Part shown: positions 1-32,963 of the stretch, in pieces
How the letters are laid out: each line of letters starts with the position of its first letter
Position numbering within the stretch: the first letter of the stretch is position 1
Origin: Macrostomum lignano
Lineage: Eukaryota
DNA: 33,681 nt
Direction: 5' to 3'
Assembly: GCA_002269645.1 (NCBI GenBank)
Contig: NIVC01004841.1
Span: forward strand, 1 to 33,681
Position numbers and translations under genes: made by a program
The notes under the pieces: generated by a model
What the model saw: the letters and a program-made list of their open reading frames with translations, nothing else
What the model was told of the DNA's origin: nothing
The model's database searches: none

Positions 1-3000
1 AGGCGATAATCTGAGCCAGGAATCTCCGAGAGCCTCTCGTTACACATACAGATGTTCTGCCTTGATGCTGGACTAGCTCACTTTCTAGGAATCTGTTCTG
101 ATTGCATTCTAACAAACTGAAGCATTCTCGGCACTAAACTTTCTCGGCGGCTCTGAGAGCCAGAGCCTCAAACAGACAGAGAAATCTGTTCGAGTTGTGT
201 CTGTAGGTTAGGTGGACCAGCTACTTCCAAAGCACTTCTAGCGATAATCTGAGCCAGGAATCTCCGAGAGCCTCTCGTTACACATCCAGATGTTCTGCCT
301 TGATGCTGGACTAGCTCACTTTCTAGGAATATGTTCTGATTGCATTCTAACAAACTGAAGCATTCTCGGCACTAAACTTTCTCGGCGGCTCTGAGAGCCA
401 GAGCCTCAAACAGACAGACAAATCTGTTCGAGTTGTGTCTGTAGGTTAGGTGGACCAGCTACTCCAAAGCACTTCTAGGCGATAATCTGAGCCATGAATC
501 TCCGAGAGCCTCTCGTTACACATCCAGATGTTCTGCCTTGATGCTGGACTAGCTCACTTTCTAGGAATCTGTTCTGATTGCATTCTAACAAACTGAAGCA
601 TTCTCGGCACTAAACTTTCTCGGCGGCTCTGAGAGCCAGAGCCTCAAACAGACAGAGAAATCTGTTCGAGTTGTGTCTGTAGGTTAGGTGGACCAGCTAC
701 TCAAGCACTTCTAGGCGATAATGAGCCAGGAATCTCCGAGAGCCTCTCGTTACACATACAGATGTTCTGCCTTGATGCTGGACTAGCTCACTTTCTAGGA
801 ATCTGTTCTGATTGCATTCTAACAAACTGAAGCATTTCGGCACTAACTTTCTCGGCGGCTCTGAGAGCCAGAGCCTCAAACAGACAGAGAAATCTGTTCG
901 AGTTGTGTCTGTAGGTTAGGTGGACCAGCTACTCCAAAGCACTTCTAGGCGATAATCTGAGCCAGGAGTCTCCGAGAGACTTCGTTACACATCCAGATGT
1001 TCTGCCTTGATGCTGGACTAGCTCACTTTCTAGGAATCTGTTCTGATTGCATTCTAACAAACTGAAGCATTCTCGGCACTAAACTTTCTCGGCGGCTCTG
1101 AGAGCCAGAGCCTCAAACAGACAGAAATCTGTTCGAGTTGTGTCTGTAGGTTAGGTGGACCAGCTACTCCAAAGCACTTCTAGGCGATAATCTGAGCCAG
1201 GAATCTCCGAGAGCCTCTCGTTACACATCCAGATGTTCTGCCTTGATGCTGGACTAGCTCACTTTCTAGGAATCTGTTCTGATTGCATTCTAACAAACTG
1301 AAGCATTCTCGCACTAAACTTTCTCGGCGGCTCTGAGAGCCAGAGCCTCAAACAGACAGAGAAATCTGTTCGAGTTGTGTCTGTAGGTTAGGTGGACCAG
1401 CTACTCAAAGCACTTCTAGGCGATAATCTGAGCCAGGAATCTCCGAGAGCCTCTCGTTACACATCCAGATGTTCTGCCTTGATGCTGGACTAGCTCACTT
1501 TCTAGGAATCTGTTCTGATTGCATTCTAACAAACTGAAGCATTCTCGGCACTAAACTTTCTCGGCGGCTCTGAGAGCCAGAGCCTCAAACAGACAGAGAA
1601 ATCTGTTCGAGTTGTGTCTGTAGGTTAGGTGGACCAGCTACTCCAAAGCACTTCTAGGCGATAATCTGAGCCAGGAATCTCGAGAGCCTCTCGTTACACA
1701 TCCATGTTCTACCTTGATGCTGGACTAGCTCACTTTCTAGGAATCTGTTCTGATTGCATTCTAACAAACTGAAGCATTCTCGGCACTAAACTTTCTCGGC
1801 GGCTCTGAGAGCCAGAGCCTCAAACAGACAGACAAATCTGTTCGAGTTGTGTCTGTAGGTTAGGTGGACCAGCTACTCCAAAGCACTTCTAGGCGATAAT
1901 CTGAGCCAGGAATCTCCGAGAGCCTCTCGTTACACATCAGATGTTCTGCCTTGATGCTGGACTAGCTCACTTTCTAGGAATCTGTTCTGATTGCATTCTA
2001 ACAAACTGAAGCATTCTCGGCACTAAACTTTCTCGGCGGCTCTGAGAGCCAGAGCCTCAAACAGACAGAGAAATCTGTTCGAGTTGTGTCTGTAGGTTAG
2101 GTGGACCAGCTACTCCAAAGCACTTCTAGGCGATAATCTGAGCCAGGAATCTCCGAGAGCCTCTCGTTACACATCCAGATGTTCTGCCTTGATGCTGGAC
2201 TAGCTCACTTTCTAGGAATCTGTTCTGATTGCATTCTAACAAACTGAAGCATTCTCGCACTAAACTTTCTCGGCGGCTCTGAGAGCCAGAGCCTCAAACA
2301 GACAGAGAAATCTGTTCGAGTTGTGTCTGTAGGTTAGGTGGACCAGCTATTCTACAGCACTTCTAGGCGATAATCTGAGCCAGGAATCTCCAAGAGCCTC
2401 TCGTTACACATCCATGTTCTACCTTAATGCTGGACTAGCTCACTTTCTAGGAATCTGTTCTGATTGCATTCTAACAAACTGAAGCATTCTCGGCACTAAA
2501 CTTTCTCGGCGGCTCTGAGAGCCAGAGCCTCAAACAGACAGAGAAATCTGTTCGAGTTGTGTCTGTAGGTTAGGTGGACCAGCTACTCCAAAGCACTTCT
2601 AGGCGATAATCTGAGCCAGGAATCTCCGAGAGCCTCTCGTTACACATACAGATGTTCTGCCTTGATGCTGGACTAGCTCACTTTCTAGGAATTGTTCTGA
2701 TTGCATTCTAACAAACTGAAGCATTCTCGGCACTAAACTTTCTCGGCGGCTCTGACATCCAGAGCCTCAAACAGACAGAAATCTGTTCGAGTTGTGTCTG
2801 TAGGTTAGGTGGACCAGCTACTCCAAAGCACTTCTAGGCGATAATCTAAGCATGAATCTCCGAGAGCCTCTCGTTACACATCCAGATGTTTGCCTTGATG
2901 CTGGACTAGCTCACTTTCTAGGAATCTGTTCTGATTGCATTCTAACAAACTGAAGCATTCTCGGCACTAAACTTTCTCGGCGGCTCTGAGAGCCAGAGCC

Positions 3001-6000
3001 TCAAACAGACAGAAATCTGTTCGAGTTGTGTCTGTAGGTTAGGTGGACCAGCTACTCCAAAGCACTTCTAGGCGATAATCTGAGCCAGGAATCTCCGAGA
3101 GCCTCTCGTTACACATCCATGTTCTACCTTGATGCTGGACTAGCTCACTTTCTAGGAATCTGTTCTGATTGCATTCTAACAAACTGAAGCATTCTCGGCA
3201 CTAAACTTTCTCGGCGGCTCTGAGAGCCAGAGCCTCAAACAGACAGAGAAATCTGTTCGAGTTGTGTCTGTAGGTTAGGTGGACCAGCTATTCTACAGCA
3301 CTTCTAGGCGATAATCTGAGCCAGGAATCTCCAAGAGCCTCTCGTTACACATCCATGTTCTACCTTAATGCTGGACTAGCTCACTTTCTAGGAATCTGTT
3401 CTGATTGCATTCTAACAAACTGAAGCATTCTCGGCACTAAACTTTCTCGGCGGCTCTGAGAGCCAGAGCCTCAAACAGACAGAGAAATCTGTTCGAGTTG
3501 TGTCTGTAGGTTAGGTGGACCAGCTACTCCAAAGCACTTCTAGGCGATAATCTGAGCCAGGAATCTCCGAGAGCCTCTCGTTACACATCCAGATGTTCTG
3601 CCTTGATGCTGGACTAGCTCACTTTCTAGGAATCTGTTCTGATTGCATTCTAACAAACTGAAGCATTCTCGGCACTAAACTTTCTCGGCGGCTCTGAGAT
3701 CCAGAGCCTCAAACAGACAGAAATCTGTTCGAGTTGTGTCTGTAGGTTAGGTGGACCAGCTACTCCAAAGCACTTCTAGGCGATAATCTGAGCCAGGAAT
3801 CTCCGAGAGCCTCTCGTTACACATCCATGTTCTACCTTGATGCTGGACTAGCTCACTTTCTAGGAATCTGTTCTGATTGCATTCTAACAAACTGAAGCAT
3901 TCTCGGCACTAAACTTTCTCGGCGGCTCTGAGAGCCAGAGCCTCAAACAGACAGAGAAATCTGTTCGAGTTGTGTCTGTAGGTTAGGTGGACCAGCTATT
4001 CTACAGCACTTCTAGGCGATAATCTGAGCCAGGAATCTCCAAGAGCCTCTCGTTACACATCCATGTTCTACCTTAATGCTGGACTAGCTCACTTTCTAGG
4101 AATCTGTTCTGATTGCATTCTAACAAACTGAAGCATTCTCGGCACTAAACTTTCTCGGCGGCTCTGAGAGCCAGAGCCTCAAACAGACAGAGAAATTGTT
4201 CGAGTTGTGTCTGTAGGTTAGGTGGACCAGCTACTCCAAAGCACTTCTAGGCGATAATCTAGCCAGGAATCTCCGAGAGCCTCTCGTTACACATCCAGAT
4301 GTTCTGCCTTGATGCTGGACTAGCTCACTTTCTAGGAATCTGTTCTGACTGCATTCTAACAAACTGAAGCATTCTCGGCACTAAACTTTCTCGGCGGCTC
4401 TGAGAGCCAGAGCCTCAAACAGACAGAGAAATCTGTTCGAGTTGTGTCTGTAGGTTAGGTGGACCAGCTACTCCAAAGCACTTCTAGGCGATAATCTGAG
4501 CCAGGAATCTCCGAGAGCCTCTCGTTACACATCCAGATGTTCTGCCTTGATGCTGGACTAGCTCACTTTCTAGGAATCTGTTCTGATTGCATTCTAACAA
4601 ACTGAAGCATTCTCGGCACTAAACTTTCTCGGCGGCTCTGAGATCCAGAGCCTCAAACAGACAGAAATCTGTTCGAGTTGTGTCTGTAGGTTAGGTGGAC
4701 CAGCTACTCCAAAGCACTTCTAGGCGATAATCTGAGCCAGGAATCTCCGAGAGCCTCTCGTTACACATCCAGATGTTCTGCCTTGATGCTGGACTAGCTC
4801 ACTTTCTAGGAATATGTTCTGATTGCATTCTAACAAACTGAAGCATTCTCGGCACTAAACTTTCTCGGCGGCCTGAGAGCCAGAGCCTCAAACAGACAGA
4901 GAAATCTGTTCGAGTTGTGTCTGTAGGTTAGGTGGACCAGCTACTCCAAAGCACTTCTAGGCGATAATCTGAGCCAGGAATCTCCGAGAGCCTCTCGTTA
5001 CACATCCATGTTCTACCTTGATGCTGGACTAGCTCACTTTCTAGGAATCTGTTCTGATTGCATTCTAACAAACTGAAGCATTCTCGGCACTAAACTTTCT
5101 CGGCGGCTCTGAGAGCCAGAGCCTCAAACAGACAGACAAATCTGTTCGAGTTGTGTCTGTAGGTTAGGTGGACCAGCTACTCCAAAGCACTTCTAGGCGA
5201 TAATCTGAGCCAGGAATCTCCGAGAGCCTCTCGTTACACATCCATGTTCTACCTTGATGCTGGACTAGCTCACTTTCTAGGAAAATGTTCTGATTGCATT
5301 CTAACAAACTGAAGCATTCTCGGCACTAAACTTTCTCGGCGGCTCTGAGAGCCAGAGCCTCAAACAGACAGAAATCTGTTCGAGTTGTGTCTGTAGGTTA
5401 GGTGGACCAGCTACTCCAAAGCACTTCTAGGCGATAATCTGAGCCAGGAATCTCCGAGAGCCTCTCGTTACACATACAGATGTTCTGCCTTGATGCTGGA
5501 CTAGCTCACTTTCTAGGAATCTGTTCTGATTGCATTCTAACAAACTGAAGCATTCTCGGCACTAAACTTTCTCGGCGGCTCTGAGAGCCAGAGCCTCAAA
5601 CAGACAGACAAATCTGTTCGAGTTGTGTCTGTAGGTTAGGTGGACCAGCTACTCCAAAGCACTTCTAGGCGATAATCTGAGCCAGGAATCTCCAAGAGCC
5701 TCTCGTTACACATCCATGTTCTACCTTGATGCTGGACTAGCTCACTTTCTAGGAATCTGTTCTGATTGCATTCTAACAAACTGAAGCATTCTCGGCACTA
5801 AACTTTCTCGGCGGCTCTGAGAGCCAGAGCCTCAAACAGACAGAGAAATCTGTTCGAGTTGTGTCTGTAGGTTAGGTGGACCAGCTACTCCAAAGCACTT
5901 CTAGGCGATAATCTGAGCCAGGAATCTCCGAGAGCCTCTCGTTACACATCCAGATGTTCTGCCTTGATGCTGGACTAGCTCACTTTCTAGGAATATGTTC

Positions 6001-7797
6001 TGATTGCATTCTAACAAACTGAAGCATTCTCGGCACTAAACTTTCTCGGCGGCTCTGAGAGCCAGAGCCTCAAACAGACAGACAAATCTGTTCGAGTTGT
6101 GTCTGTAGGTTAGGTGGACCAGCTACTCCAAAGCACTTCTAGGCGATAATCTAAGCCATGAATCTCCGAGAGCCTCTCGTTACACATCCAGATGTTCTGC
6201 CTTGATGCTGGACTAGCTCACTTTCTAGGAATCTGTTCTGATTGCATTCTAACAAACTGAAGCATTCTCGGCACTAAACTTTCTCGGCGGCTCTGAGAGC
6301 CAGAGCCTCAAACAGACAGAGAAATCTGTTCGAGTTGTGTCTGTAGGTTAGGTGGACCAGCTATTCTACAGCACTTCTAGGCGATAATCTGAGCCAGGAA
6401 TCTCCAAGAGCCTCTCGTTACACATCCATGTTCTACCTTAATGCTGGACTAGCTCACTTTCTAGGAATCTGTTCTGATTGCATTCTAACAAACTGAAGCA
6501 TTCTCGGCACTAAACTTTCTCGGCGGCTCTGAGAGCCAGAGCCTCAAACAGACAGAGAAATCTGTTCGAGTTGTGTCTGTAGGTTAGGTGGACCAGCTAC
6601 TCCAAAGCACTTCTAGGCGATAATCTGAGCCAGGAATCTCCGAGAGCCTCTCGTTACACATCCAGATGTTCTGCCTTGATGCTGGACTAGCTCACTTTCT
6701 AGGAATCTGTTCTGATTGCATTCTAACAAACTGAAGCATTCTCGGCACTAAACTTTCTCGGCGGCTCTGAGAGCCAGAGCCTCAAACAGACAGAGAAATC
6801 TGTTCGAGTTGTGTCTGTAGGTTAGGTGGACCAGCTACTCCAAAGCACTTCTAGGCGATAATCTGAGCCAGGAATCTCCGAGAGCCTCTCGTTACACATC
6901 CATGTTCTACCTTGATGCTGGACTAGCTCACTTTCTAGGAATCTGTTCTGATTGCATTCTAACAAACTGAAGCATTCTCGGCACTAAACTTTCTCGGCGG
7001 CTCTGAGAGCCAGAGCCTCAAACAGACAGAGAAATCTGTTCGAGTTGTGTCTGTAGGTTAGGTGGACCAGCTACTCCAAAGCACTTCTAGGCGATAATCT
7101 GAGCCAGGAATCTCCGAGAGCCTCTCGTTACACATACAGATGTTCTGCCTTGATGCTGGACTAGCTCACTTTCTAGGAATCTGTTCTGATTGCATTCTAA
7201 CAAACTGAAGCATTCTCGGCACTAAACTTTCTCGGCGGCTCTGAGATCCAGAGCCTCAAACAGACAGAGAAATCTGTTCGAGTTGTGTCTGTAGGTTAGG
7301 TGGACCAGCTACTCCAAAGCACTTCTAGGCGATAATCTGAGCCAGGAATCTCCGAGAGCCTCTCGTTACACATACAGATGTTCTGCCTTGATGCTGGACT
7401 AGCTCACTTTCTAGGAATCTGTTCTGATTGCATTCTAACAAACTGAAGCATTCTCGGCACTAAACTTTCTCGGCGGCTCTGAGATCCAGAGCCTCAAACA
7501 GACAGAAATCTGTTCGAGTTGTGTCTGTAGGTTAGGTGGACCAGATACTCCACAGCACTTCTAGGCGATAATCTGAGCCAGGAGTCTCCGAGAGACTTTC
7601 GTTACACATCCAGATGTTCTGCCTTGATGCTGGACTAGCTCACTTTCTAGGAATCTGTTCTGATTGCATTCTAACAAACTGAAGCATTCTCGGCACTAAA
7701 CTTTCTCGGCGGCTCTGAGAGCCAGAGCCTTAAACAGACTGAGAGAGCTGATTCAGTTGTGTCTGTAGGTTAGGTGGACCAGCTTCTCTACAGCAAT
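1..7797. repeat. Tandem satellite array, 238-bp consensus monomer, about 33 copies (open at the window's left edge)
   Basis: Monomer AGGCGATAATCTGAGCCAGG...CCAAAGCACTTCT restarts at 1, 240, 477, 713 ... 7563. Copies are near-identical, with recurrent variants and scattered 1-bp indels; the last copy is the most diverged. Confidence 0.98.
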
Positions 7798-9541
7798 TGA
7801 GTTGCAGGCCTTGCAGCTAGCTACTTTGAGATCATCAAACGAAACTCACTTTTCTGGACTCGGTGTCGACGGATTTGCGAGCAGACTGATGATTTTCACC
7901 AGGCGATGCGGCTTCTTCGATTTCGCAGTGGCTTTTTGCGACGGTGTTTTTTTAGTTTTTATTTTAGGCTTGGCGTCCTTTTTTGCGGGTCATCATATTT
8001 TGGTTGTAGATTACAGTTTTTGGCACAATAAATTTATATATGGATGAAACTTGGAGTAAGGATTAACATTAGACCTATTAAGTATAAAAAAACCGTTCTA
8101 ATCTATACAATTGCAATCCTTTAGAGTTGTATAGTATGGATTATAAGTACTTTCTTTTAAACTGTCTGTGTCTGGTCTCACTACGCCATGGTTTACGTGG
8201 ACCACCCGCTTAGACATTATATATCCCTCTCTCCACTGTCTTACCTTCAGAACGCTTGCGGGTTTCCTATTGGCTGCGGTCGGTCCCATTGTTGGGGTGG
8301 ATCTATCCTCCTAAGTGTTAACCAGCCAATTATAGAAAGGGAGGTCTGTCTGTCTGTCTGTTCCAACCCTATACTCCTGCACATGTGTTTACGTGGACCA
8401 AACAGACAGTGAGTGTTAGGCTGACTGTTAATGCGTTCTTAGTTTTACTGGGACCGCAATCAAGTCGACCTTTTGCTAGAGAGTCAGAGACCCGATCGCT
8501 AGTTAAAAGGCCCTTCTTAATTGCGTCCTCTTGATCAAATCTTTTGCATGTACATGTATGAATTGTCCTTTTCAATTAGGTAAATTGCATCTTCAACTTT
8601 GCACTTGAAAGGCTGCAGCTTAGGATCTTCTTCTTCCAAAATTGGAGGAGGATAGAACAGGATATCCCATAGTGTTTAGGATAGAATTGGCAAGCACTTA
8701 ATTCATGAAGTTGCTATTTTCTTCTTGTGTAATGGTAGAGCCTCAGAAATTCGCATTTACACAGTGTGGCTATCAAGGACCACTGGGAGTTCTTGTGAAG
8801 TCATTGAAGAATACTATTTAAGCTTCACTTAAATATCTTTCTTGTCTCGGAGTCTTTATCGTTTGATCTGGTTCGCGAATTGGATTTCTTTACGTTGGTG
8901 TCTTACTCTGTGAGTCTGTGCTCAGAGTACGATACCGGAATTGCTGGAACTGAGCTAATTAAATGGAGTTTAAAGTTTACTGTATCAAATTCATTTCGCA
9001 TACGAGGTTTCAGAATTTTTAATTAACCTGCGTACCTACTTGAATGTCAAAGAACTGAACGCATATTGTTTTAAAGCCAGTAGCGGTCATAATATGATGC
9101 CAACATACCCCTTTGTTCGTAAGGTAATGATCTGTAAAAAATTCAGTTTTGCATTGAATCTATGCTTAATAACTGCTATACACAAACAGACACAAACAGA
9201 CACAAACAGACACAAACAGACACAAACAGACGATTTTCGAAAAATTTTCTAAAATTTTTCGGTTTACGTGGACCAGACTCGCTCGGTTTAGGTAGACCAG
9301 GCTGGAGGTCCAGCTAAACTGAAATGCGAATAACTTTGGAAAAAACCATGCTAGACATCCCAAAATTGCTTAAGCCTTTCTTGACCCGCCTGACATTAAT
9401 GTGAGATCCTCATCAACGTCTTAACCCCACCAGAGACAAAATTATTTGGTGGTCCACCTAAGTGGTCTACCTACACCGGTTGGTCCAGCTAACGAGGCTA
9501 CTGAACTTCCAAAAAGTCCACGTAAACACACAGACAGTAGA

Positions 9542-9836
<295 letters not shown>

Positions 9837-10345: not shown

Positions 10346-10729
<384 letters not shown>

Positions 10730-11218: not shown

Positions 11219-11257
11219 CCAACACACAATCTGCTTGGGATCTGTTCAAATTTTGAT

Positions 11258-11783
11258 TGGAATCTTCGCACAATCAGCTTGGAATCTACGCACAATCTGC
11301 TTGGAATCTACGCACAATCTGCTTGGAATCTACGCAGAATCTGCTTCGAATCTACCCACAATCTGCTTGGAATCTACGCACAATCTGCTTGGAATCTACG
11401 CACAATCAGCTTGGAATCTACGCAGAATCTGCTTGGAATCTACCCACAATCTGCTTGGAATCTACGCACAATCTGCTTGGAATCTACGCAGAATCTGCTT
11501 CGAATCTACCCACAATCTGCTTGGAATCTACGCACAATCTGCTTGGAATCTACGCAGAATCTGCTTCGAATCTACCCACAATCTGCTTGGAATCTACGCA
11601 CAATCTGCTTCGAATCTACCCACAATCTGCTTCGAATCTACCCACAATCTGCTTGGAATCTACGCACAATCTGCTTCGAATCTACGCAGAATCTGCTTGG
11701 AATCTACGCACAATCTGCTTGGAATCTACGCACAATCTGCTTGGAATCTACGCAGAATCTGCTTCGAATCTACCCACAATCTG
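11258..11783 (+). repeat. 22-bp minisatellite (AATCTGCTTGGAATCTACGCAC)n, about 24 copies
   Basis: The unit is two 11-nt halves, each starting AATCT. Variants are TTGG/TTCG and ACGCAC/ACCCAC/ACGCAG. Confidence 0.97.
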
Positions 11784-13440: not shown

Positions 13441-14165
13441 TCACTCATCAACTCTGTAATGAACTCACTCATGAACTCACTCATAAACTCACTCATGAGC
13501 TCACTCATGAGCTCACTCATGAACTCACTCATGAACTCACTCATGAACTCACTCATGAACTCACTCAGGAACTCACTCATGAACTCACTCATGAACTCAC
13601 TCATGAACTCACTCATGAACTCACTCATGAACTCACTCATGAACTCACTCATGAACTCACTCATGAACTCACCTATGAACTCACTCATGAACTCACTCAT
13701 GAACTCACTCATGAACTCACTCATGAACTCACTCATGAACTCACTCATGAACTCACCTATGAACTCACTCATGAACTCACTCATGAACTCACCTATGAAC
13801 TCACTCATGAACTCACTCATGAACTCACCTATGAACTCACTCATGAACTCACCTATGAACTCACTCATGAACTCACTCATAAACTCACTCATGAACTCAC
13901 TCATGAACTCACTCATGAACTCACTCATGAACTCACTCATGAACTCACTCATGAACTCACTCATGAACTCACTCATAAACTCACTCATAAACTCTGTAAT
14001 GAACTCACTCATTAAATCACTCATGAAATCACTTATGAGCTCACTCATGAACTCACTAATGAGCTCACTCATGAACTCACTCATAAACAAACTTGAGCTC
14101 ACTCATGAACTCACTCATAAACAAACTCATGAACTCACTCATAAACTCACTCATGAACTCTCTCA
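13441..14165 (+). repeat. 12-bp minisatellite (ATGAACTCACTC)n, about 60 copies, inside the predicted intron
   Basis: Directly visible. It explains the MNSL and EFMS repeat ORFs. Confidence 0.97.
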
Positions 14166-14577: not shown

Positions 14578-15212
14578 TATAACAAATTGAATACCAAAGT
14601 ACACAGTGAAGTGTTAAATTAAACCATTAAAATAAGAAATATGCTTAGATATTTATTTCTGCTAATACCAACATAAAGATGTGATCAGACGGAGTTTTTG
14701 CTGGCACACGATGGTACAAAGTTATTTTTTTGGCGGTAATTTTTCGCGCAATATGCCCTTGGTCTACTTTCTGATGAGCATATGAGTGCGCACAGCTTCC
14801 TAATTTTTTTATTTACGCTCGTATCGTCAGAATTTGAAATTTAGGTTTATCCGACCCGACTGATGTAGCTAAGTGAGTTAACACTTAGTCTAGGGATGTC
14901 AATTCCCCGAAAAATTCGCACCCTAGGGAACCCGGGGATTTTTCGGCTAAAACCCCTTGGGTCCCGGTAAAGAATGTGTGGACATCAAAAAACACGTCGA
15001 AGTTCCAACCAAAAAAAGTTGCAGATATTGTAGCAGTTTTACTGTGCGTATGCTCTGACTGTGTAAAACGGTATCGCGGGCTTCTCTGCATGTCTGGCCC
15101 TCGGTCCTTCTGAAACTTCACAATAGCAATCTGGCCCGCTTGAGGTCTGTGTCTCTTCTCAGCTCTCTTCTCTACTCTCTCCTTTCATCTCCTCCCTCTC
15201 CCCTCCTCTCCT

Positions 15213-15986
<774 letters not shown>

Positions 15987-18753: not shown

Positions 18754-18759
18754 TATAAA
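18754..18759 (+). promoter_or_regulatory. Candidate TATA box of the acidic precursor gene
   Basis: TATAAA about 125 nt upstream of the ATG at 18882. The position is plausible but no TSS evidence is available. Confidence 0.4.
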
Positions 18760-18881
18760 TTCGATACGGACTGCTCGCGAAGCCGGGATCGAACTCGAAT
18801 TGTCTCAGCGACTCCTCCAGGTTCCGCAGCTGTCCCTCCCCCCGGTTTTGCTTGCCAAACAAATCGAGACAGACAAAAAGC

Positions 18882-18941
18882 ATGCGCCTTCTGTTGGTTG
18901 CCATGGGCATCGCGCTCTGCATCGCGCAGATGCACCGTGAG
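18882..18941 (+). CDS. Acidic secreted precursor, exon 1 (signal peptide MRLLLVAMGIALCIAQMHRE)
   Basis: ATG, hydrophobic core and a phase-0 donor GAG|GTGAGA. The 92-nt intron ends in a C-run plus TACAG, and the exon joins in frame to the 427-aa ORF. Confidence 0.85.
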
Positions 18942-19033
18942 GTGAGACAAATTTATCAAAATGCCTCAAATTGGATTTTTTGAGTTAAAGTGAACTTCCG
19001 TAGCCTTAAAATCGCACCCCCCCCCCCCTACAG

Positions 19034-20374
19034 TCTGATGCGCGAGCTCTCAAGCGTCAAGCCTACGACGTAGGCTACTCCGATAGCGTCATGCCGTCGA
19101 GCTTCGACGATATGAAGAGGGAAGACTCAATTTTCGATGAGTACGATGATCAGGACGACGAAGGGGGCCTGTTTGGCAGACGGAAGAAGGAGGACGATGA
19201 GGAAGATGAAGAAGAGGAGTATGAGGAGGAGGAAGAAGAGGAAGAGGAGACCGAGGACAGGAGGAAGCGACAGGATAATCGAGTAGAACAGGAGGAGGTC
19301 GAAGAGATTATAGAGGAGATTGAAGAAGAGGTGGAGGAGATCCGAGAAGAGGAGTATGAGGAGGAGGAGGAGGAGAGCTACGACAGAAGGAAGAAGCGAC
19401 AGGACGATGAGGAAGATGAAGAAGAGGAGAATGAGGAGGAGGAGGAGGAGGAGGAGGAGAGCTACGACAGAAGGAAGAAGCGACAGGACGATGAGGAAGA
19501 TGAAGAAGAGGAGTATGAGGAGGAGGAGGAGGAGGAGAGCTACGACAGGAGGAAGAAGCGACAGGACGATGAGGAAGATGAAGAAGAGGAGTATGAGGAG
19601 GAGGAGGAGGAGAGCTACGACAGGAGGAAGAAGCGACAGGACGATGAGGAAGATGAAGAAGAGGAGAATGAGGAGGAGGAGGAGGAGGAGGAGAACTACG
19701 ACAGGAAGAAGCGACAGGACGATGAGGAAGATGAGGAAGAGGAGTATGAGGAGGAAGAGGAGGAGGAGGAGAACTACGACAGGAGGAAGAAGCGACAGGA
19801 TGATGAGGAAGATGAAGAAGAGGAGAATGAGGAGGAGGAGGAGGAGGAGGAGAACTACGACAGGAGGAAGAAGCGACAGGACGATGAGGAAGATGAAGAA
19901 GAGGAGTATGAGGAGGAGGAGGAGAACTACGACAGGAAGAAGCGACAGGATGATGAGGAAGATGAAGAAGAGGAGAATGAGGAGGAGGAGGAGGAGGAGG
20001 AGAGCTACGACAGAAGGAAGAAGCGACAGGACGATGAGGAAGATGAAGAAGAGGAGTATGAAGAGGATGAGGAGAACTACGACAGGAAGAAGCGACAGGA
20101 TGATGAGGAAGATGAAGAAGAGGAGAATGAGGAGGAGGAGGAGGAGGAGGAGGAGAGCGAGGACAGGAGGAAGAAGCGACAGGAGGACGAGGAAGATGAA
20201 GAATACGAGGAGGACTACGACAGGAAGAAGAAGTATAGTGACATGGACTTCTATGACGAGGACATCGAGTCCAACCCGGACCAAGAATTTTTCGGCCGGA
20301 GGAAGAAGGAGGACGACCAGGACGAGGATGAGGACTACTATAAGAGGAGGAAGCGGGCCAGGCGTTCGGTCTAG
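19034..20374 (+). CDS. Acidic secreted precursor, exon 2 (SDARALKR...RRSV*): prohormone/granin-like polyprotein, 466 aa spliced
   Basis: Acceptor CCCTACAG|TCT is in frame with the ORF at 19091. There are 11 KKRQ plus 1 RKRQ repeat junctions, and all repeat length variation is in whole codons. Two FG-RRKK motifs are present; stop TAG at 20372-20374 and ATTAAA at 20528. Confidence 0.9.
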   Translation, partial: SDARALKRQAYDVGYSDSVMPSSFDDMKREDSIFDEYDDQDDEGGLFGRRKKEDDEEDEEEEYEEEEEEEEETEDRRKRQDNRVEQEEVEEIIEEIEEEVEEIREEEYEEEEEESYDRRKKRQDDEEDEEEENEEEEEEEEESYDRRKKRQDDEEDEEEEYEEEEEEESYDRRKKRQDDEEDEEEEYEEEEEESYDRRKKRQDDEEDEEEENEEEEEEEENYDRKKRQDDEEDEEEEYEEEEEEEENYDRRKKRQDDEEDEEEENEEEEEEEENYDRRKKRQDDEEDEEEEYEEEEENYDRKKRQDDEEDEEEENEEEEEEEESYDRRKKRQDDEEDEEEEYEEDEENYDRKKRQDDEEDEEEENEEEEEEEEESEDRRKKRQEDEEDEEYEEDYDRKKKYSDMDFYDEDIESNPDQEFFGRRKKEDDQDEDEDYYKRRKRARRSV

Positions 20375-20756
20375 GAGAATCAGCGGAGATCCGCGCGAGT
20401 CAGTGCGCTGAAGGAACTGACCGACAAGAGCTGCAGGCTTCACACTGGACTGAAACCGTCTTGCCCCGATCTTATTAACTTAAAGCATGCACCAATGCTT
20501 CAAGACTATGTTTGGCGCCTAGAGCCTATTAAAAACATTTTTGACAGTAAAACTAAAATATATAATTGTAACATCCCGAAAAATGCGACAAAACGAACGA
20601 TTTTAGTGATAAATTTTAAACTCGGTGGGTTTCAAATTTTAAGCTAAATGACATGCATGAGCACTTTAACTGACTCCTGTTCGGCACCTCTTATGCTTTG
20701 ACCTTCAGCTGCGCTGCATTCTGACAGAAAACATCCGAAAATTTTGTCTGTCAAAA

Positions 20757-22222
<1,466 letters not shown>

Positions 22223-23562: not shown

Positions 23563-24403
23563 GCTATGGGAATCTTAGCTATGAGAATCTTAGCTATGAG
23601 AATCTTAGATATGAAAATCTTGGCTTTGAAAATCTTAGCTATGAGAATCTTAGCTATGAGAATCTTAGCTATGATAATCTTGGCTTTGAAAATCTTAGCT
23701 ATGAGAATCTTGGCTATGAGAATCGTAGCTATGAAAATCTTGGCTATGAGAATCTTAGCTATGAGAATCGTAGCTATGAAAATCTTAGCTATGAAAATCT
23801 TAGCTATGAGAATCTTAGCTATGAGAATCTTAGCTATGAGAATCTTAGCTATGAGAATCGTAGCTATGAAAATCTTAGCTATGAAAATCTTAGCTATGAG
23901 AATCTTAGCTATGAAAATCTTAGCTATGAGAATCTTAGCTATGAGAATCTTAGCTATGATAATCTTGGCTTTGAAAATCTTAGCTATGAGAATCTTGGCT
24001 ATGAGAATCGTAGCTATGAGAATCTTGGCTATGAGAATCTTAGCTATGAGAATCGTAGCTATGAAAATCTTAGCTATGAAAATCTTAGCTATGAGAATCT
24101 TAGCTATGAGAATCGTAGCTATGAGAATCTTAGCTATGAGAATCTTAGCTATGAGAATCTTAGCTATGAGAATCTTAGCTATGAGAATCGTAGCTATGAG
24201 AATCTTGGCTATGAGACTCTTAGCTATGAAAATCTTAGCTATGAAAATCTTAGCTATGAGAAGCTTGGCTTTGAAAATCTTAGCTATGAGAATCTTAGCT
24301 ATGAGAATCTTAGCTATGAGAATCTTGGCTATGAGAATCTTAGCTATGAGAATCTTAGCTATGAGAATCTTGGCTATGAGAATCTTAGCTATGAGAATCT
24401 TAG
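23563..24403 (+). repeat. 15-bp minisatellite (AATCTTAGCTATGAG)n, about 56 copies
   Basis: Directly visible. It explains the ENLSY, ILAMR and KILIA ORFs. Confidence 0.98.
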
Positions 24404-24858: not shown

Positions 24859-25414
24859 GCACCTGATGCGCAGCCCTCACTGATTGCTTCATGCATCAGT
24901 TGACAGAGAATTCCTACAGGACCTACAGGAAAAAATCTGCGACCTTCCTATGCTGACTTCGCGTCAATTTCTCTACCATTAACAACTCTTTCTCTCCGCT
25001 TTGCCTGCACAAAAGCGCAGGGCCGAGAGGCCTCGGTTCTCTCGTCAGTTCCAGATTCTATTGGAACAGCAGGGGAATGACAGAAAGCTGCTGAATGCCA
25101 GCTCTCTGCCTGCGAGTGTTTATCAGCCACCGCAAATATTCCCTGCCGTGTTTATCTACTGGGAGAGGAGGGAGCCCAGCAGCCCCGCCTGCCTGCCGGT
25201 CTGTCTGTCTGTAATCCCAAATCCCCAGGCCTCTTATTGCCCACGCACTCATACCGTTTTCCATTTTCTGTCCACCTTGGTAATTCTCCTCTGCATCGGC
25301 AGGGAGCTGGAATTTATTCGATGGGAGAGGAGCGGGTTGGGAGTTCGAAGACGGAAGTGACAGCAGCTGATTTCAGCTGGGAGTCTCGGGGCAACTGAGA
25401 GCTCCTGCTTTGTT

Positions 25415-27047
25415 GACTCTTAGATATGAGATTCTCATTGAGATTAATCTTAGATATGAGATTCTAATTGAGATGACTCTTAGATACGAGATTCTCATTG
25501 AGATGACTCTTAGATACGAGATTCTCATTGAGATGACTCTTAGATACGAGATTCTCATTGAGATGACTCTTAGATACGAGATTCTCATTGAGATTATTCT
25601 TAGATACGAGATTCTCATTGAGATGACTCTTAGATACGAGATTCTCATTGAGATGACTCTTAGATATGAGATTCTCATTGAGATGACTCTTAGATACGAG
25701 ATTCTCATTGAGATTGCTTTTAGATACGAGATTCTCATTGAGATGATTCTTAGATACGAGATTCTTATTGAGATTGCTTTTAGATACGAGATTCTCATTG
25801 AGATGATTTTTAGATACGAGATTCTCATTGAGATTACTCTTGGATATGAGATTCTCATTGAGATTACTCTTGGATATGAGATTCTCATTGAGATGACTCT
25901 TAGATACGAGATTCTCATTGAGATGACTCTTAGATACGAGATTCTCATTGAGATGACTCTTAGATACGAGATTCTCATTGAGATGACTCTTAGATACGAG
26001 ATTCTCATTGAGATTGCTTTTAGATACGAGATTCTCATTGAGATGATTCTTAGATACGAGATTCTCATTGAGATTACTCTTGGATATGAGATTCTCATTG
26101 AGATTACTCTTGGATATGAGATTCTCATTGAGATGACTCTTAGATACGAGATTCTCATTGAGATGACTCTTGGATACGAGATTCTCATTGAGATGACTCT
26201 TAGATACGAGATTCTCATTGAGATGACTCTTAGATACGAGATTCTCATTGAGATTCTCATTGAGATGACTCTTAGATATGAGATTGTCATTGAGATTCTC
26301 ATTGAGATGACTCTTAGATACGAGATTCTCATTGAGATGACTCTTAGATACAAGATTCTCATTGAGATGACTCTTAGATATGATATTCTCATTGAGATTC
26401 TCATTGAGATGACTCTTAGATACGAGATTCTCATTGAGATGACTCTTAGATATGAGATTCTCATTGAAATGACTCATAGATATGAGATTCTCATTGAAAT
26501 GACTCTTAGATACAAGATTCTCATTGAGATGACTCTTAGATACAAGATTCTCATTGAGATGACTCTTAGATACGAGATTCTCATTGAGATGACTCTTAGA
26601 TACAAGATTCTCATTGAGACGACTCTTAGATACGAGATTCTCATTGAGACGACTCTTAGATACGAGATTCTCATTGTGATGACTCTTAGATATGAGATTC
26701 TCATTGAGATGACTCTTAGATACGAGATTCTGATTGAGATGACTCTTAGATACGAGATTCTCATTGAGATGACTCTTAGATACGAGATTCTCATTGAGAT
26801 GACTCTTAGATACGAGATTCTCATTGAGATGACTCTTAGATACGAGATTCTCATTGAGATGACTCTTAGATATGAGATTCTCATTGAGATGACTCTTAGA
26901 TACGAGATTCTCATTGAGATGACTCTTAGATACGAGATTCTCATTGAGATGATTCTTAGATACGAGATTCTCATTGAGATGACTCTTAGATACGAGATTC
27001 TCATTGAGATGACTCTTAGATACAAGATTCTCATTGAGATGACTCTT
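25415..27047 (+). repeat. 30-bp minisatellite (TCTTAGATACGAGATTCTCATTGAGATGAC)n, about 54 copies
   Basis: Directly visible. Occasional 12-nt internal duplications of ATTCTCATTGAG occur, and the unit contains the palindromes GAGATTCTC and TCTCATTGAGA. Confidence 0.98.
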
Positions 27048-27979
27048 CGATCACTGAGATGATTCTCGCAGATTCTGCAAAAATCTCTTGCTCATCATGC
27101 CACTCAATTATTACTCAGCCGACTTCACCGAACTCGGCAAACTGCTTTAAACTGTTGCTGTGCTCAGAGCAGAGACTCTTGGGAGCTGCAGGGAGCGGCA
27201 GACGGGAGTGCATCGATTCGACAACGAAAGGAGGTGAGGAAGGGGGCAGTGGGGGAATTCAGGGAGAGCTGGTCAGTGATGAAGCGGCTTCGAGGCTGGA
27301 AAATTTGATAAAAGGTTAAAGCGGCGAGGCCGGCGCCGCCTGAGTCTCTGGTTGGCAGCCATGGGGGGATTTGGGAGAAATAGGGGGAGATGGGGAGAGG
27401 CGGCTCCCACGGGAGCGGGTGGATTCGGAGGCTTGCCATTCTCCGCTCATCAACATCCCGCTGGTCGCACGGGGCCCACATACACGCTTTGCTTGTCAAG
27501 AGAAGAGAGGAGAGGAGAAGCAACGACTCGGTTGAGGAAGAGATGAAGAAGGGAAGCTGCAGCCGGTCCGCCCTGCCACTCCCCTACACCGCCCGTCGGT
27601 CAAGCTTTTGCCAGATTCAGGGCCAAATTTCTCTTGCAAAATTCACTTACGTAGTCGCTATAGATGACGGGGAGGCCTGAGCAGGGCGCGGTGAGTCTGG
27701 CGGCGTCTTCATTAGAGGCTCTCGTCTGAGATGGGGGAGGGCAGCACAGGCTGAGTTAGTTCGGAGTTCCCAGCTGGGCACCGGCTAAGCACATAACATG
27801 CGGGAGGAGCGAGGTTAGCCAAGCAGCGAATTAGAACTTTTGCCAACTATGGCCCTGCGTGCGTCATTGCGGAGGAGTTCTTTTTAATCAGGCTCAGTTA
27901 CTGTAGAAATTCAAGTACGTCCAGTGCAGTGCTGCTCTGGTGATTATTCTGATATTATTATCCGATAATGAACAATGAG

Positions 27980-29200
27980 ACGAGAAGAGGGAGGGGGAGA
28001 GGAAAGGAGAGGAGAGGAGAGGAGAGGAGAGGAGAGGAGAGGAGAGGAGAGGAGAGGAGAGGAGAGGAGAGGAGAGGAGCGGACAGAAGAGGAGAGGAGA
28101 GGAGAGGACAGGAGAGGAGAGGAGAGGAGAGGAGAGGAGAGGACAGGAGAGGAGAGGAGAGGAGAGGAGAGGAGAGGAGCGGACAGGAGAGGAGAGGAGA
28201 GGAGAGGAGAGGAGCGGACAGGAGAGGAGAGGAGAGGAGAGGAGAGGAGAGGAGAGGAGAGCAGAGGACAGGAGAGGAGAGGAGAGGAGAGGAGAGGAGA
28301 GGAGCGGACAGGAGAGGAGGGAGAGGAGAGGAGAGGAGAGGAGAGGAGAGGAGAGGAGAGGAGAGGAGAGGAGAGGAGAGGAGGGAGAGGAGAGGAGAGG
28401 AGAGGAGAGGAGAGGAGAGGAGAGGAGCGGACAGGAGAGGAGAGGAGAGGAGAGGAGAGGAGAGGAGAGGAGAGGAGAGGAGAGGAGAGGAGAGGAGAGG
28501 AGAGGAGGGGAGAGGAGAGGAGAGGAGAGGAGAGGAGAGGAGAGGAGAGGAGAGGAGAGGAGAGGAGAGGAGAGGAGGGGAGAGGAGAGGAGAGGAGAGG
28601 AGAGGAGAGGACAGGAGAGGAGCGGACAGGAGAGGAGAGGAGAGGAAAGGAGAGGAGAGGAGAGGAGGGAGAGAGAGAGGAGAGGAGAGGAGAGGAGAGG
28701 AGAGGAGAGGAGAGGAGAGGAGAGGAGAGGAGAGGAGAGGAGGGGAGAGGAGAGGAGAGGAGAGGAGAGGAGAGGAGAGGAGAGGAGCGGACAGGAGAGG
28801 AGAGGAGAGGAAAGGAGAGGAGAGGAGAGGAGGAGAGGAGAGGACAGGAGAGGAGAGGAGAGGAGAGGAGAGGAGCGGACAGGAGAGGAGGGGAGAGGAG
28901 AGGAGAGGAGAGGAGAGGAGAGGAGAGGCGAGGAGAGGAGAGGAGAGGAGAGGACAGGAGAGGACAGGAGAGGAGAGGAGGGAGAGGAGAGGAGAGGAGA
29001 GGACAGGAGAGGAGAGGAGGGGGAGAGGAGAGGAGAGGAGAGGAGAGGAGAGGACAGGAGAGGACAGGAGAGGAGAGGAGAGGAGAGGAGAGGAGAGGAG
29101 AGGAGAGGAGAGGAGAGGAGAGGAGAGGAGAGGACAGGACAGGAGAGGACAGGACAGGAGAGGAGAGGAGAAGACAGGACAGGAGAGGACAGGAGAGGAG
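27980..29200 (+). repeat. (GGAGA)n purine-rich pentanucleotide satellite with GGACA/GGAGC variants
   Basis: Directly visible. Confidence 0.98.
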
Positions 29201-30063: not shown

Positions 30064-30571
30064 ATGCTGGCATTTCTGGCGGCAGCAGCGGCAGTGCTGC
30101 TAAGCCTGCCGCAGGCGGCACTGCAGTGCCAGTACCGCAACGGCTACATTTTCGAATGCGGTCACAACCAGCTGAGCAGGATGTCCCAGCTGCGCGGACC
30201 CCTGCCCGATGGTGTCACAGTGCTGGACATTTCCTACAACAGGTTTGACCAGCTGGACCCAGCCTACTTGGTGGAGCAGTTCCCCGGAGTGCAGCAGGTG
30301 CTGGCAGTGGACAACAGAATTACCAGACTGCTGCTGAATACCGATGCTCAAACTACTTGGCCGCAGTTGAGACTGCTCAGGCTGAGCAGGAACCGGCTGG
30401 AATCGATCAGCCGAGACGAGTTCTCATTCGGCACAGGCCTGGAGACGCTGCATCTCGACAACAATCGGTTGCAGAGTCTCAACAGGGGCTGCTTCAGCAG
30501 GTGTCACAATTTGAGTTTGCTCAATTTGGCGCACAATAATCTGGACTTTCTGCACTCAGATTACTTCTGGG
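30064..30571 (+). CDS. LRRN/NLRR-like LRR-Ig-FN3-TM receptor, exon 1 (signal peptide, N-cap, first LRRs)
   Basis: MLAFLAAAAAVLLSLPQAALQ signal peptide, LxxLxLxxN repeats (LRLLRLSRN, LETLHLDNN, LSLLNLAHN) and a phase-1 donor TGG G|GTGAGC. Confidence 0.92.
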
Positions 30572-30609
30572 GTGAGCATTGCGGCTTACTGAACCGGTTA
30601 GGGGGGGGG

Positions 30610-30682
30610 GGGTTGTAGCCTAGTGGTTAGAGCGTCGGACTCACTACTTGAAAGGTCGGGGGTTCGATTCCAGATCCACTAG
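30610..30682 (+). mobile_element. tRNA-like Pol III head (SINE fragment or tRNA pseudogene) in intron 1
   Basis: A-box TAGCCTAGTGGTTAGAGCG and B-box GGTTCGATTCC, but the anticodon and T stems pair poorly, so it is not a functional tRNA. Confidence 0.6.
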
Positions 30683-30752
30683 AACAATTTGTGTCTAATA
30701 TCTAAAATATTGCGCACAATAAAGTACATCAGAATCTTCTACCTCCGCACAG

Positions 30753-31707
30753 GCCTGTGGAGCCTTCAGCGACTCCAGCTCAGCCACAACCAGCTCACCG
30801 GACTGTCCAGCGACGCCCTCGGCCACCTGCACAGCCTGAAAGCGCTGGACCTCAGCCACAACCGCATCAAGTCCCTGTCAGCCTCCGCTCTCCAGGGCCT
30901 GCCAAGCCTGTCCAGACTCAGCCTCGCAGGCAACCAGCTGACGGAGTTCCCGATGGACGCGCTGAAACCGTCGCAGTCCCTGCTGCACCTGGACCTGTCG
31001 GGCAACCTCCTGACTGACCTGTACCCCGGCACCGTCACTCAGCTGGCCGCGCTCGAGAGACTGCTGCTGAACAACTCCGAGGAGTTGCAGCTCATCGATG
31101 CCGGAGCTTTCCAACGCCTGCCGCGACTGCGCCTGCTGGACGTCACCGACAGTCGCCGGCTGGTGTACATCAGCGCCAATGCATTTGTCAACTGTCCTCG
31201 TCTGGCGAAACTGCGACTGACCGGCTGCCCGCTGGCTGTCGCTCCGCTGGCGGACTGGCGACGAAACTCGCCGAAGATCAGCTCGATCGACATCGCCGAG
31301 GCGACACCCACCGGGGCTCCTGGCTCTGGCGGTGGCGGCGGCGGCGTCATGGTGATGGACCTGTTCCCGGCCGAGATCGTGCTGTCAGAGGGCCACCGGC
31401 TCAGGCTGCCTTGCCGCTCTTATCCGGAAGGTCGGGCCCGCTGGCGGCTGCCCGCCGGTCTGGCGGCTGGCCGCTTCGCTGGAGGCGGCGAGCAGAGGCG
31501 ACATCTACGGCATCACGTGACCGTCACTCCGCAGCAGGACCTGCTGCTGCACGACGCCTTTGACAAGCTGAGCGGCACATATGCCTGCGTTGCCGACGAA
31601 GAAGTCAACGCGACCGCCGAGCATCCGGCGGAGAGCTTAGGGGGCCGCTGAGACGAGAGGTTGCCATCAGCGTCAAACGGCTGGAGAGCCGGCTGCTGCT
31701 GTTGAAG
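30753..31707 (+). CDS. LRRN/NLRR-like receptor, exon 2 (LRRs, Gly linker, Ig domain); needs one frameshift between 31595 and 31648
   Basis: Phase-1 acceptor CCGCACAG|GC. The segment LERLLLNNSEELQLIDAGAFQRLPRLRLLDVTDSRRLVYISANAF resembles LRRN proteins as I recall them. Ig motifs are LRLPC..W and SGTYAC. The shifted frame gives ASGGELRGPLRREVAISVKRLESRLLLLK and a phase-0 donor AAG|GTGAAG. Confidence 0.85.
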
Positions 31708-31801
31708 GTGAAGAACAGACAGAGAGATTTTAAGACACATATCGATAGACAGAATAAACGGTAGGAACATACAGATGAAAACTCCGACGCTAAGACACTA
31801 C

Positions 31802-32104
<303 letters not shown>

Positions 32105-32135
32105 CGTCCCACCTCCGCCGACCCTCCAAATCCAG

Positions 32136-32528
32136 CTGACCGAAAACAGCATCGTGGTGACCTGGCAGAATCTCAACAACCCGGACGATTTCGTGCTGAT
32201 GTACCGGCCGCGCGGTGACACGGACTCTGGCTACCACCGCATCCGCCTGCGCGCCTACATGAAGCGGTACTCCATCAGCAGCCTGAGACCCGGCTGCGCC
32301 TACCAGCTGTGCCTGGCGCTGAGGACCTATACAGATTACCAGCACCTGCACTGCATGGTGGTGACCACCCTGACTGGCCGGGAGTCAGGTGACAGAGACA
32401 ATTTACTATTCAACGGAAGAATCGTGCTGGTGCTGGTTATTGGCATAGCGGTGTCAGTCGGCGTTCTAGTGGCCTGCTTGGTGGCCTGCAGCCTGTCGCG
32501 AGATAAAGAAACGGACGCTTGGAGTCAG
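32136..32528 (+). CDS. LRRN/NLRR-like receptor, exon 3 (FN3 domain and transmembrane helix)
   Basis: Phase-0 acceptor AAATCCAG|CTG. FN3 signatures are TENSIVVTW and [16 protein letters not shown], and the TM is [23 protein letters not shown]. It either splices at CAG|GTGATG (32528) or reads on to TGA at 32559-32561. Confidence 0.88.
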
Positions 32529-32963
32529 GTGATGAGAGTACCAGCTGCCCGCCTTGTGTGAACAACAGTTTTATCAAAATATTTCGGTCTCAAAAGGTCT
32601 CGGTAGTCTTTTAAACAGAGGATAAAGGCGCCATACTGGGTTGCCGAAGGTTGCAACCAAGGATTTTATATTAGCGTCAAGCAACACAGTCCTCGAAGCT
32701 TCGAGGTGGCCATTTCGTAAACAATGTTACTTCCGAGACGACGCATCCAAGAACGACTTAACTAAAGTGCAATGCTTCACATGTCTTTGGGGCTACAAGA
32801 AGCTGGTCAAAAACTTACTCTAGTGCGATTCCAGAGGGAGTCAGTCAGAACTTTTCCCTTAAAAATATGAGTAGCTGTTTAGCGAGGGCATGCCGTACTT
32901 GAGCTCAGATATAGAAGCTGCGCCTAGTACACACTACACACTAGTGAGCCTTGAAACCTTGCC

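Follow-up and report, generated by a model that had tools for sequence, protein, structure and literature searches.

A two-exon gene of Macrostomum lignano and its predicted product, a convertase-processed precursor of polyanionic peptides

What is made by a gene whose predicted protein consists to more than one half of Asp and Glu, with short and nearly identical acidic peptides set between clusters of Lys and Arg? This question is raised by a locus of Macrostomum lignano at positions 18882 to 20374 on the forward (+) strand of contig NIVC01004841.1 (assembly GCA_002269645.1). The whole stretch of 33,681 nucleotides that was analysed is called the window here; all coordinates refer to it, and all features of the gene lie on its + strand. 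The locus is a real, complete and unusual two-exon gene of this species. Its product may be a secretory polyprotein that releases soluble polyanions, a reading which, taken as a whole, we favour tentatively and hold to be somewhat short of probable.

The coding sequence runs from an ATG at 18882 to a stop codon ending at 20374, in two exons that specify a spliced protein of 466 amino acids. A preliminary description of the locus, made from the sequence letters, had given exactly these ends; a single intron of 92 nt lies between them. A TATAAA box (18754..18759) is found 29 nt 5′ of position 18783, which is the first base covered by the sole database relative, the 159-residue fragment UniRef100_A0A1I8IM69 (P0001 in the following) from the same species. 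The inferred 5′ untranslated region (UTR) extends from there to 18881; in P0001 it is translated, in frame, into 33 residues that match the window throughout. A TAA is in frame just 5′, and the ATG at 18882 is the first one downstream of it. The coding part of exon 1 (18882..18941, 60 nt, MRLLLVAMGIALCIAQMHRE) encodes a predicted signal peptide, MRLLLVAMGIALCIA, followed by Gln and then MHRE. The intron (18942..19033) is in phase 0, has GT..AG borders (GTGAGA...CCCCCCCCTACAG) and carries a polypyrimidine C10 tract before the TACAG of its 3′ end. Exon 2 (19034..20374, 1341 nt) closes with a TAG stop at 20372-20374, and a candidate polyadenylation signal, ATTAAA, follows at 20528..20533, 154 nt 3′ of the stop. 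When the intron is retained, the reading ends at a stop after 23 codons, and therefore splicing is needed.

An open reading frame (ORF) alone is little evidence at this locus, because two further frames are open across the repeat array, one in the +2 frame (363 aa) and one on the antisense strand (438 aa), so that three of the six frames are open in all. What settles the frame is the exon with the signal peptide, the canonical splice that preserves it, the ends outside the repeat and the independent model P0001, which spans the splice junction and reads MHRE directly followed by SDARAL. In addition, the unique C-terminal module remains in frame beyond 849 nt of array. The unique ends have no second copy within the window, and the pro-region was found once by tblastn.

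The intact protein, of about 55 kDa, contains 188 Glu, 72 Asp, 50 Arg, 34 Lys, 26 Tyr and 6 Gly residues, which corresponds to 56% Asp+Glu and 18% Lys+Arg, or 260 acidic versus 84 basic residues. The signal peptide proposed in the preliminary description is supported by a rule-based check of charge, hydrophobic core and −3/−1 residues: Arg2 is followed by a 13-residue core with a mean Kyte-Doolittle value of 2.9, and Cys-Ile-Ala stands ahead of Gln16. The predicted signal-peptidase site thus has small residues at −3 and −1 (Cys and Ala), and cleavage would probably occur after Ala15. With its 13 residues the core is too short for a membrane anchor. Downstream of it there are 19 clusters of at least two Lys or Arg residues, and 14 positions fit the motif R-x-[KR]-R; the earlier count of about 17 segments was right as to the furin/prohormone-convertase type of these multibasic sites and slightly low in number. 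Gln stands behind each array site that ends in Arg and is the first residue of 13 predicted peptides, in line with the N-terminal Gln that had been described.

From the splice junction onwards, the protein begins with a non-repetitive pro-region (19034..19120), SDARAL-KR-QAYDVGYSDSVMPSSFDDM-KR, followed at 19121..19189 by the peptide EDSIFDEYDDQDDEGGLF with an amidation-type signal, Gly-RRKK. An acidic unit lacking the initial Gln, EDDEEDEEEEYEEEEEEEEETED, with a net charge of −21 and the cluster RRKR behind it, occupies 19190..19270. It is followed at 19271..19384 by a less repetitive acidic peptide of 38 residues, QDNRVEQEEVEEIIEEIEEEVEEIREEEYEEEEEESYD, also with a net charge of −21. This peptide differs from the other units by Ile and Val residues that recur in its poly-Glu with a roughly heptad spacing, and may represent the repeat's ancestor in a less eroded state or an amphipathic helix. 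The array proper, ten canonical units and one degenerate unit (QEDEEDEEYEEDYD-RKKK), extends over 19385..20233. Behind it, at 20234..20308, stands the peptide YSDMDFYDEDIESNPDQEFF with the second amidation-type signal, again Gly-RRKK, and the C-terminal tail EDDQDEDEDYY-KRRKR-A-RR-SV with the TAG stop completes the frame (20309..20374).

The canonical unit of the array can be written as (R)RKKR-QDDEEDEEEE[Y/N]E(5-9)[S/N]YD and is present in ten near-identical copies, one of which ends with SED instead. Where about eleven near-copies had been seen before, we count these ten, the degenerate unit and the Gln-less variant. Roughly 20 acidic residues in each had been given previously; the canonical and Gln-less units have 15-21 and the degenerate 14-mer has 11. 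Predicted net charges of the twelve near-copies range from −11 to −21. Without the degenerate 14-mer (about 1.84 kDa, net charge −11), the predicted peptides have 19-23 residues, masses of 2.45-2.94 kDa and net charges of −15 to −21. For the predicted peptide QDDEEDEEEEYEEEEEEESYD a mass of 2696.9 Da is calculated, and 2679.9 Da for its pyroglutamyl (pGlu) form (−17.03 Da). Constant among the canonical units are the basic site, the Gln, the DDEEDEEEE head and the charge, and the penultimate Tyr is present in nine of ten. Two features that the preliminary description had linked to modification vary among the units: the Tyr in the acidic centre, a possible sulfation site, is found in 5/10 canonical units and replaced by Asn in the other 5/10, and the Ser of S-Y-D is likewise shared between Ser (5/10) and Asn (5/10). 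Since the mid-Tyr and the Ser each occur in only half of the units, neither sulfation nor FAM20C-type phosphorylation can be a constant feature of the products. Of the FAM20C motif, S-x-D is moreover the weaker variant.

That the basic sites are regularly spaced is due to a young tandem duplication and not to independent recurrence, so that the copies, eleven in number, cannot be counted as independent observations. With Tandem Repeats Finder (TRF), the array shows periods of 78/81 nt (85-87% match) and of 153 nt (90%); the latter, higher-order period is explained by the Asn-type and Tyr-type units, which mostly alternate. The unit lengths are 84, 78, 75, 78, 81, 81, 69, 81, 69, 84 and 54 nt, all multiples of three. 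That lengths change by whole codons only, as had been pointed out before, is thus correct and yet weak evidence, because the changes sit in the (GAG)n run or in one loss of AGG, where slippage by triplets is expected. What was amplified is the acidic peptide together with its cleavage site, with the Phe-Gly peptides lying outside the amplification. In the 15-codon block RRKKR-QDDEEDEEEE, all three nucleotide sites that vary among the ten units are synonymous (3/3; P about 0.003-0.014 if neutral), and the amino acid changes (Tyr/Asn, Ser/Asn, Tyr to Glu, Glu to Asp) are confined to the second half of the unit. Such a pattern, though suggestive only, fits a frame in which the cleavage site and the N-terminus created by it are under constraint.

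A feature that had been missed before are the two amidation-type sites. Both non-repeat peptides, at residues 50-68 and 421-441, end with Phe-Gly directly before RRKK-EDD, and Phe-Gly before a basic cluster is a classical alpha-amidation signal. The junction FGRRKKEDD is common to both modules, with a score that was reached in 1/2000 shuffles, whereas the cores of the two peptides are not similar (observed score reached in 1596/2000 shuffles). Their net charges are −8 and −9. The repeated units, which end with Tyr-Asp, contain no Gly-basic signal of this kind. Amidation is thus predicted for two products, and the Phe-Gly-RRKK sites open the way to reading the protein as a peptide-hormone precursor. 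A likeness of the first Phe-Gly peptide to orcokinin or pedal peptides (DSI, FDE, GGLFG) was considered and dropped, as not even the two cores resemble each other.

Database searches placed the protein in no described family, as the preliminary description had supposed. A Pfam scan of the 466 residues gave 0 families at E≤1, and thus no LRR, no granin and no neuropeptide family, while the same scan detected LRR_8 at E=1e-17 and 1e-32 in a neighbouring gene as a positive control. A HMMER search with the unique N-terminal part (52 aa) against 1.84 billion representative proteins returned P0001 only. A query with the unique ends, as recommended in the preliminary description, likewise gave P0001 as its one hit; that description had overlooked the existing UniProt fragment. 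The C-terminal module as query gave no match, a metagenome scan gave no relatives, and in an exact-sequence look-up neither the spliced protein nor the exon-2 ORF was present in the protein collection. Queries with the full-length protein and with repeat junctions (shortened Glu runs) were swamped by low-complexity matches and are uninformative rather than negative evidence. Rfam gave no match in the whole window. A literature search with peptide strings (QDDEEDEEEE, DEGGLF, PDQEFF, IFDEYDD, GGLFamide, EFFamide) and the accession found no relevant paper, and nothing relevant was found either on acidic convertase-cut repeat proteins or on acidic proteins in Macrostomum. As far as the searched collections reach, the gene appears to be an orphan of Macrostomum.

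P0001 is identical to the window at 157/159 positions. At the two remaining positions it has Ala15Ser, which puts another small residue at the predicted −1 site, and Pro41Ser. The simplest reading of this fragment is a homeologue or an allele from another assembly that ends where the repeat begins; as a database model, it has 33 codons of 5′ UTR translated as protein. Its UniProt name is 'Acidic leucine-rich nuclear phosphoprotein 32-related protein 2-like'. An ANP32 identity is not supported, as there is no LRR domain and a signal peptide is predicted; most likely the name was transferred automatically on the grounds of composition. The 'ANP32-related' label of A0A1I8IM69 is therefore an unsupported entry which can be corrected.

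Taken together, we propose the following course for the protein. The signal peptide would be removed and the chain would enter the endoplasmic reticulum. Late in the secretory pathway, this disordered chain would be cleaved behind every R-x-K/R-R or RRKK by enzymes of the furin/prohormone-convertase type, and a carboxypeptidase would then trim the basic residues. The N-terminal Gln of the released peptides may cyclise to pyroglutamate, which would leave them with ends protected from proteases. By copy number and mass, the output would consist mainly of the roughly 12 acidic near-copy peptides, accompanied by the 38-mer with its charge of −21, two shorter acidic peptides and two distinct peptides of 18-20 residues which are predicted to end with a Phe-amide. 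The polyanion is taken as the main, selected product because only the acidic unit has been amplified. It may act as a counter-ion that condenses cationic cargo or Ca2+/Mg2+ in a secretory granule or, once released, as a competitor for Lys/Arg-rich extracellular proteins.

In favour of this polyanion precursor speaks the complete gene model, which extends from the TATAAA to the ATTAAA and includes a start codon preceded by a stop in its own frame, an intron in phase 0 and a terminal stop. Further support comes from P0001, which starts at the place where transcription would be expected to begin from the TATA box, from the signal-peptide features, from the multibasic clusters with their Gln, from the synonymous changes in the junction block, from the amplification of the acidic unit alone and from the processing known in a planarian. 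Several points weigh against it. Secretion, each cleavage and modification step, the producing cell type and the function are predictions, and no orthologue was found in the searches described above by which conservation could be judged. The predicted modification sites (mid-Tyr, Ser) vary among the units. The synonymous-site argument is drawn from three sites only, and the units, being 85-90% identical at the DNA level, are young, so that their sameness says little on selection. Finally, with about half of the window being tandem repeat, neutral growth of a minisatellite inside an exon is plausible.

The same processing could also serve a different product. In that case the gene would encode a hormone or neuropeptide precursor with EDSIFDEYDDQDDEGGLF-NH2 and YSDMDFYDEDIESNPDQEFF-NH2, and perhaps QAYDVGYSDSVMPSSFDDM, as the active peptides, and the acidic array would serve as a spacer or sorting domain and owe its expansion to unequal crossing-over of a neutral kind; we regard this as possible but unlikely. 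It would account for Phe-Gly standing directly before two of the 19 basic clusters, in both cases as FGRRKKEDD, in a protein where Gly is rare (6/466). In invertebrate precursors, amidated peptides commonly have acidic spacers beside them, and the array here is young, in a region where tandem repeats abound. For flatworms, amidated products of cleavage at basic residues have been documented (PMC2953531). However, multi-copy precursors normally amplify the active peptide, and here the acidic unit alone is amplified. The candidate peptides are themselves very acidic and, as the shuffles indicate, dissimilar outside the junction, Pfam gave no neuropeptide match, and no relevant paper was found for GGLFamide or EFFamide. 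Another reading is secretion of the chain with hardly any cleavage. As a block polyampholyte or a polyanionic matrix protein, it would then belong to a granule, to mucus or rhabdites, to the egg shell or to a cement, and would bind cations or cationic proteins as a whole. The signal peptide and the extreme net charge agree with such a role, and the dense acidic P′ side (Q-D-D-E-E) might slow convertases. We consider it improbable, as RRKKR, basic from P1 to P5, is a strong furin-type site in a protein with no predicted fold (no Pfam domain), and as the Gln behind every Arg-ending array site has an obvious meaning only with a new N-terminus. A biomineral matrix protein was set aside, because M. 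lignano is not known to make a mineral skeleton.

Two further explanations do without a secreted effector. Poly-Glu tracts interspersed with Lys/Arg clusters are typical of nuclear acidic proteins of the ANP32, nucleoplasmin or prothymosin type, in which RRKKR would be a nuclear localisation signal and the acidic tracts would bind histones, and the nearest database entry bears an ANP32-type name. Such an identity is nevertheless quite improbable: no LRR or other domain is present (0 Pfam families at E≤1), the first ATG past the in-frame stop starts a hydrophobic signal sequence, and the strictly periodic junctions of basic site and Gln are foreign to those families. The least probable of all explanations, in our judgement, is a locus without function, namely a young, decaying or neutrally expanding GAG-rich minisatellite that stays open behind a former secretory exon. 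Three of six frames open across the array, a window of which about 50% is tandem repeat, and the lack of relatives outside the species in the HMMER and metagenome searches would all suit this explanation. Against it, the locus has an undamaged promoter, splice sites, stop and poly(A) signal, and the second copy or allele has stayed open, its 159 residues differing by two conservative changes. The array, 849 nt long, has not put the unique C-terminal module out of frame, and the substitutions in the junction block are all synonymous.

As for the surroundings, about half of the window is tandem repeat according to TRF, and the gene is an island between arrays. A 236-bp satellite with 33 copies of 97% identity occupies positions 1-7795 and runs off the window start. 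Between it and the gene lie (ACAG)n at 9526-9827, (CTAT)n at 10346-10729, a 22-mer array at 11225-11783, a 12-mer array at 13441-14165 and (TCTG)n at 15212-15986. On the other side, an (ATAG)n array of 1.5 kb (20757-22222) starts about 380 nt after the stop codon of the gene and is followed by a 15-mer array at 23563-24403, a 30-mer array at 25414-27060 and (GAGAG)n at 27977-29200. The neighbouring multi-exon gene (30064-32561, + strand) begins with a signal-like hydrophobic N-terminus, MLAFLAAAAAVLLSL. Besides the two LRR_8 matches given above, it shows weak Ig_3 and fn3 matches and a hydrophobic, transmembrane-like stretch near 32420-32500, and is predicted to have the architecture of an LRR-Ig-FN3 membrane protein. 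A (GACA)n array at 31802-32104 lies inside this gene and is presumably intronic.

Among known systems, the convertase-cut multi-copy precursor is an established class, whereas one in which the amplified product is a polyanion of about 20 residues with a charge of −15 to −21 is not known to have been described, as far as our searches reach. Precursors of the FMRFamide and proenkephalin types and the planarian npp/spp prohormones (PMC2953531) resemble the predicted protein in having a signal peptide and tandem units at di- or multibasic sites. Multi-copy animal precursors also share with it the Gly-basic amidation signals, two of which are present here, and acidic stretches between the products. 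They differ in that the amplified unit is here a polyanion of 19-23 residues without an amidation signal, and no sequence relationship was found. Processing of the predicted kind has a precedent in a planarian, where prohormone convertase 2-dependent prohormone processing and C-terminal amidation were shown by mass spectrometry and RNA interference (PMC2953531).

Comparisons can be drawn with three further groups. Granins (chromogranin A/B, secretogranins) are acidic granule proteins with many dibasic sites which bind Ca2+, undergo Tyr sulfation and are cleaved to peptides. The protein studied here resembles them in its acidic composition and multiple basic sites; it has, however, no Pfam granin match, is far more extreme with 56% Asp+Glu, strictly periodic and much shorter. 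The Rep1 repellents of Ustilago maydis, fungal Kex2-processed proteins (KEPs), Drosophila Baramicin and the honeybee apidaecin precursors are repeat proteins processed by Kex2 or furin. In each case a secreted polyprotein is cut at R-x-K/R-R or KR into near-identical short peptides that act through their physicochemical properties, as may be the case here, but these products are hydrophobic or cationic, and sequences and lineages are unrelated. With ANP32, prothymosin-alpha and nucleoplasmin there is a likeness in the poly-Glu/Asp tracts among Lys/Arg clusters; in contrast to these, our protein has a predicted signal peptide, no LRR or nucleoplasmin core, and periodic R-x-K-R/Gln junctions. 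If the peptides are made, they would represent a natural, genetically encoded polyelectrolyte whose copy number, length and charge can be read from the gene, which would be relevant to granule condensation, cation buffering and coacervate or adhesive chemistry.

A conceivable functional counterpart has been postulated in the same species. Wunderer et al. reported that heparin and the 1.7-kDa fondaparinux block the attachment of M. lignano, that Lys, Arg, MgCl2 or a cationic peptide block its detachment, and predicted a small negatively charged molecule of the releasing gland which binds to the Lys/Arg repeats of the cationic glue protein Mlig-ap1 (PMC6410801). In later papers the releasing factor of the duo-gland system is still called unidentified. 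The peptides predicted here, with about 2.5-2.9 kDa and net charges of −15 to −21, would match this description in size and charge. The vesicles of the releasing gland were reported to be positive for polysaccharide by periodic acid-Schiff staining and low in nitrogen and protein (PMC6410801), which points away from a peptide. In the supplements of a prostate/seminal-fluid screen and of a positional RNA-seq paper there is no acidic, ANP32 or poly-E entry, and nothing in them ties the gene to the tail plate. Because Glu-rich peptides carry less nitrogen than the average protein, the vesicle cytochemistry weakens the idea without excluding it. We consider it very unlikely that the pGlu-polyGlu/Asp peptides are the duo-gland releasing factor. 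If they were, they would be stored in the releasing-gland vesicles of about 90 nm and, after discharge, would prevail over the glycocalyx of the anchor cell in binding to the Lys/Arg-rich repeats of Mlig-ap1, the cohesive protein of the glue, with detachment within a second. The product would then be a 'peptide heparin', encoded in the genome and manufactured by convertases. Only for M. lignano among animals has a small anionic factor of detachment been predicted explicitly without having been found so far, and in situ hybridisation, RNA interference and transgenesis are available for this species; the gene described here provides a concrete candidate for that factor.

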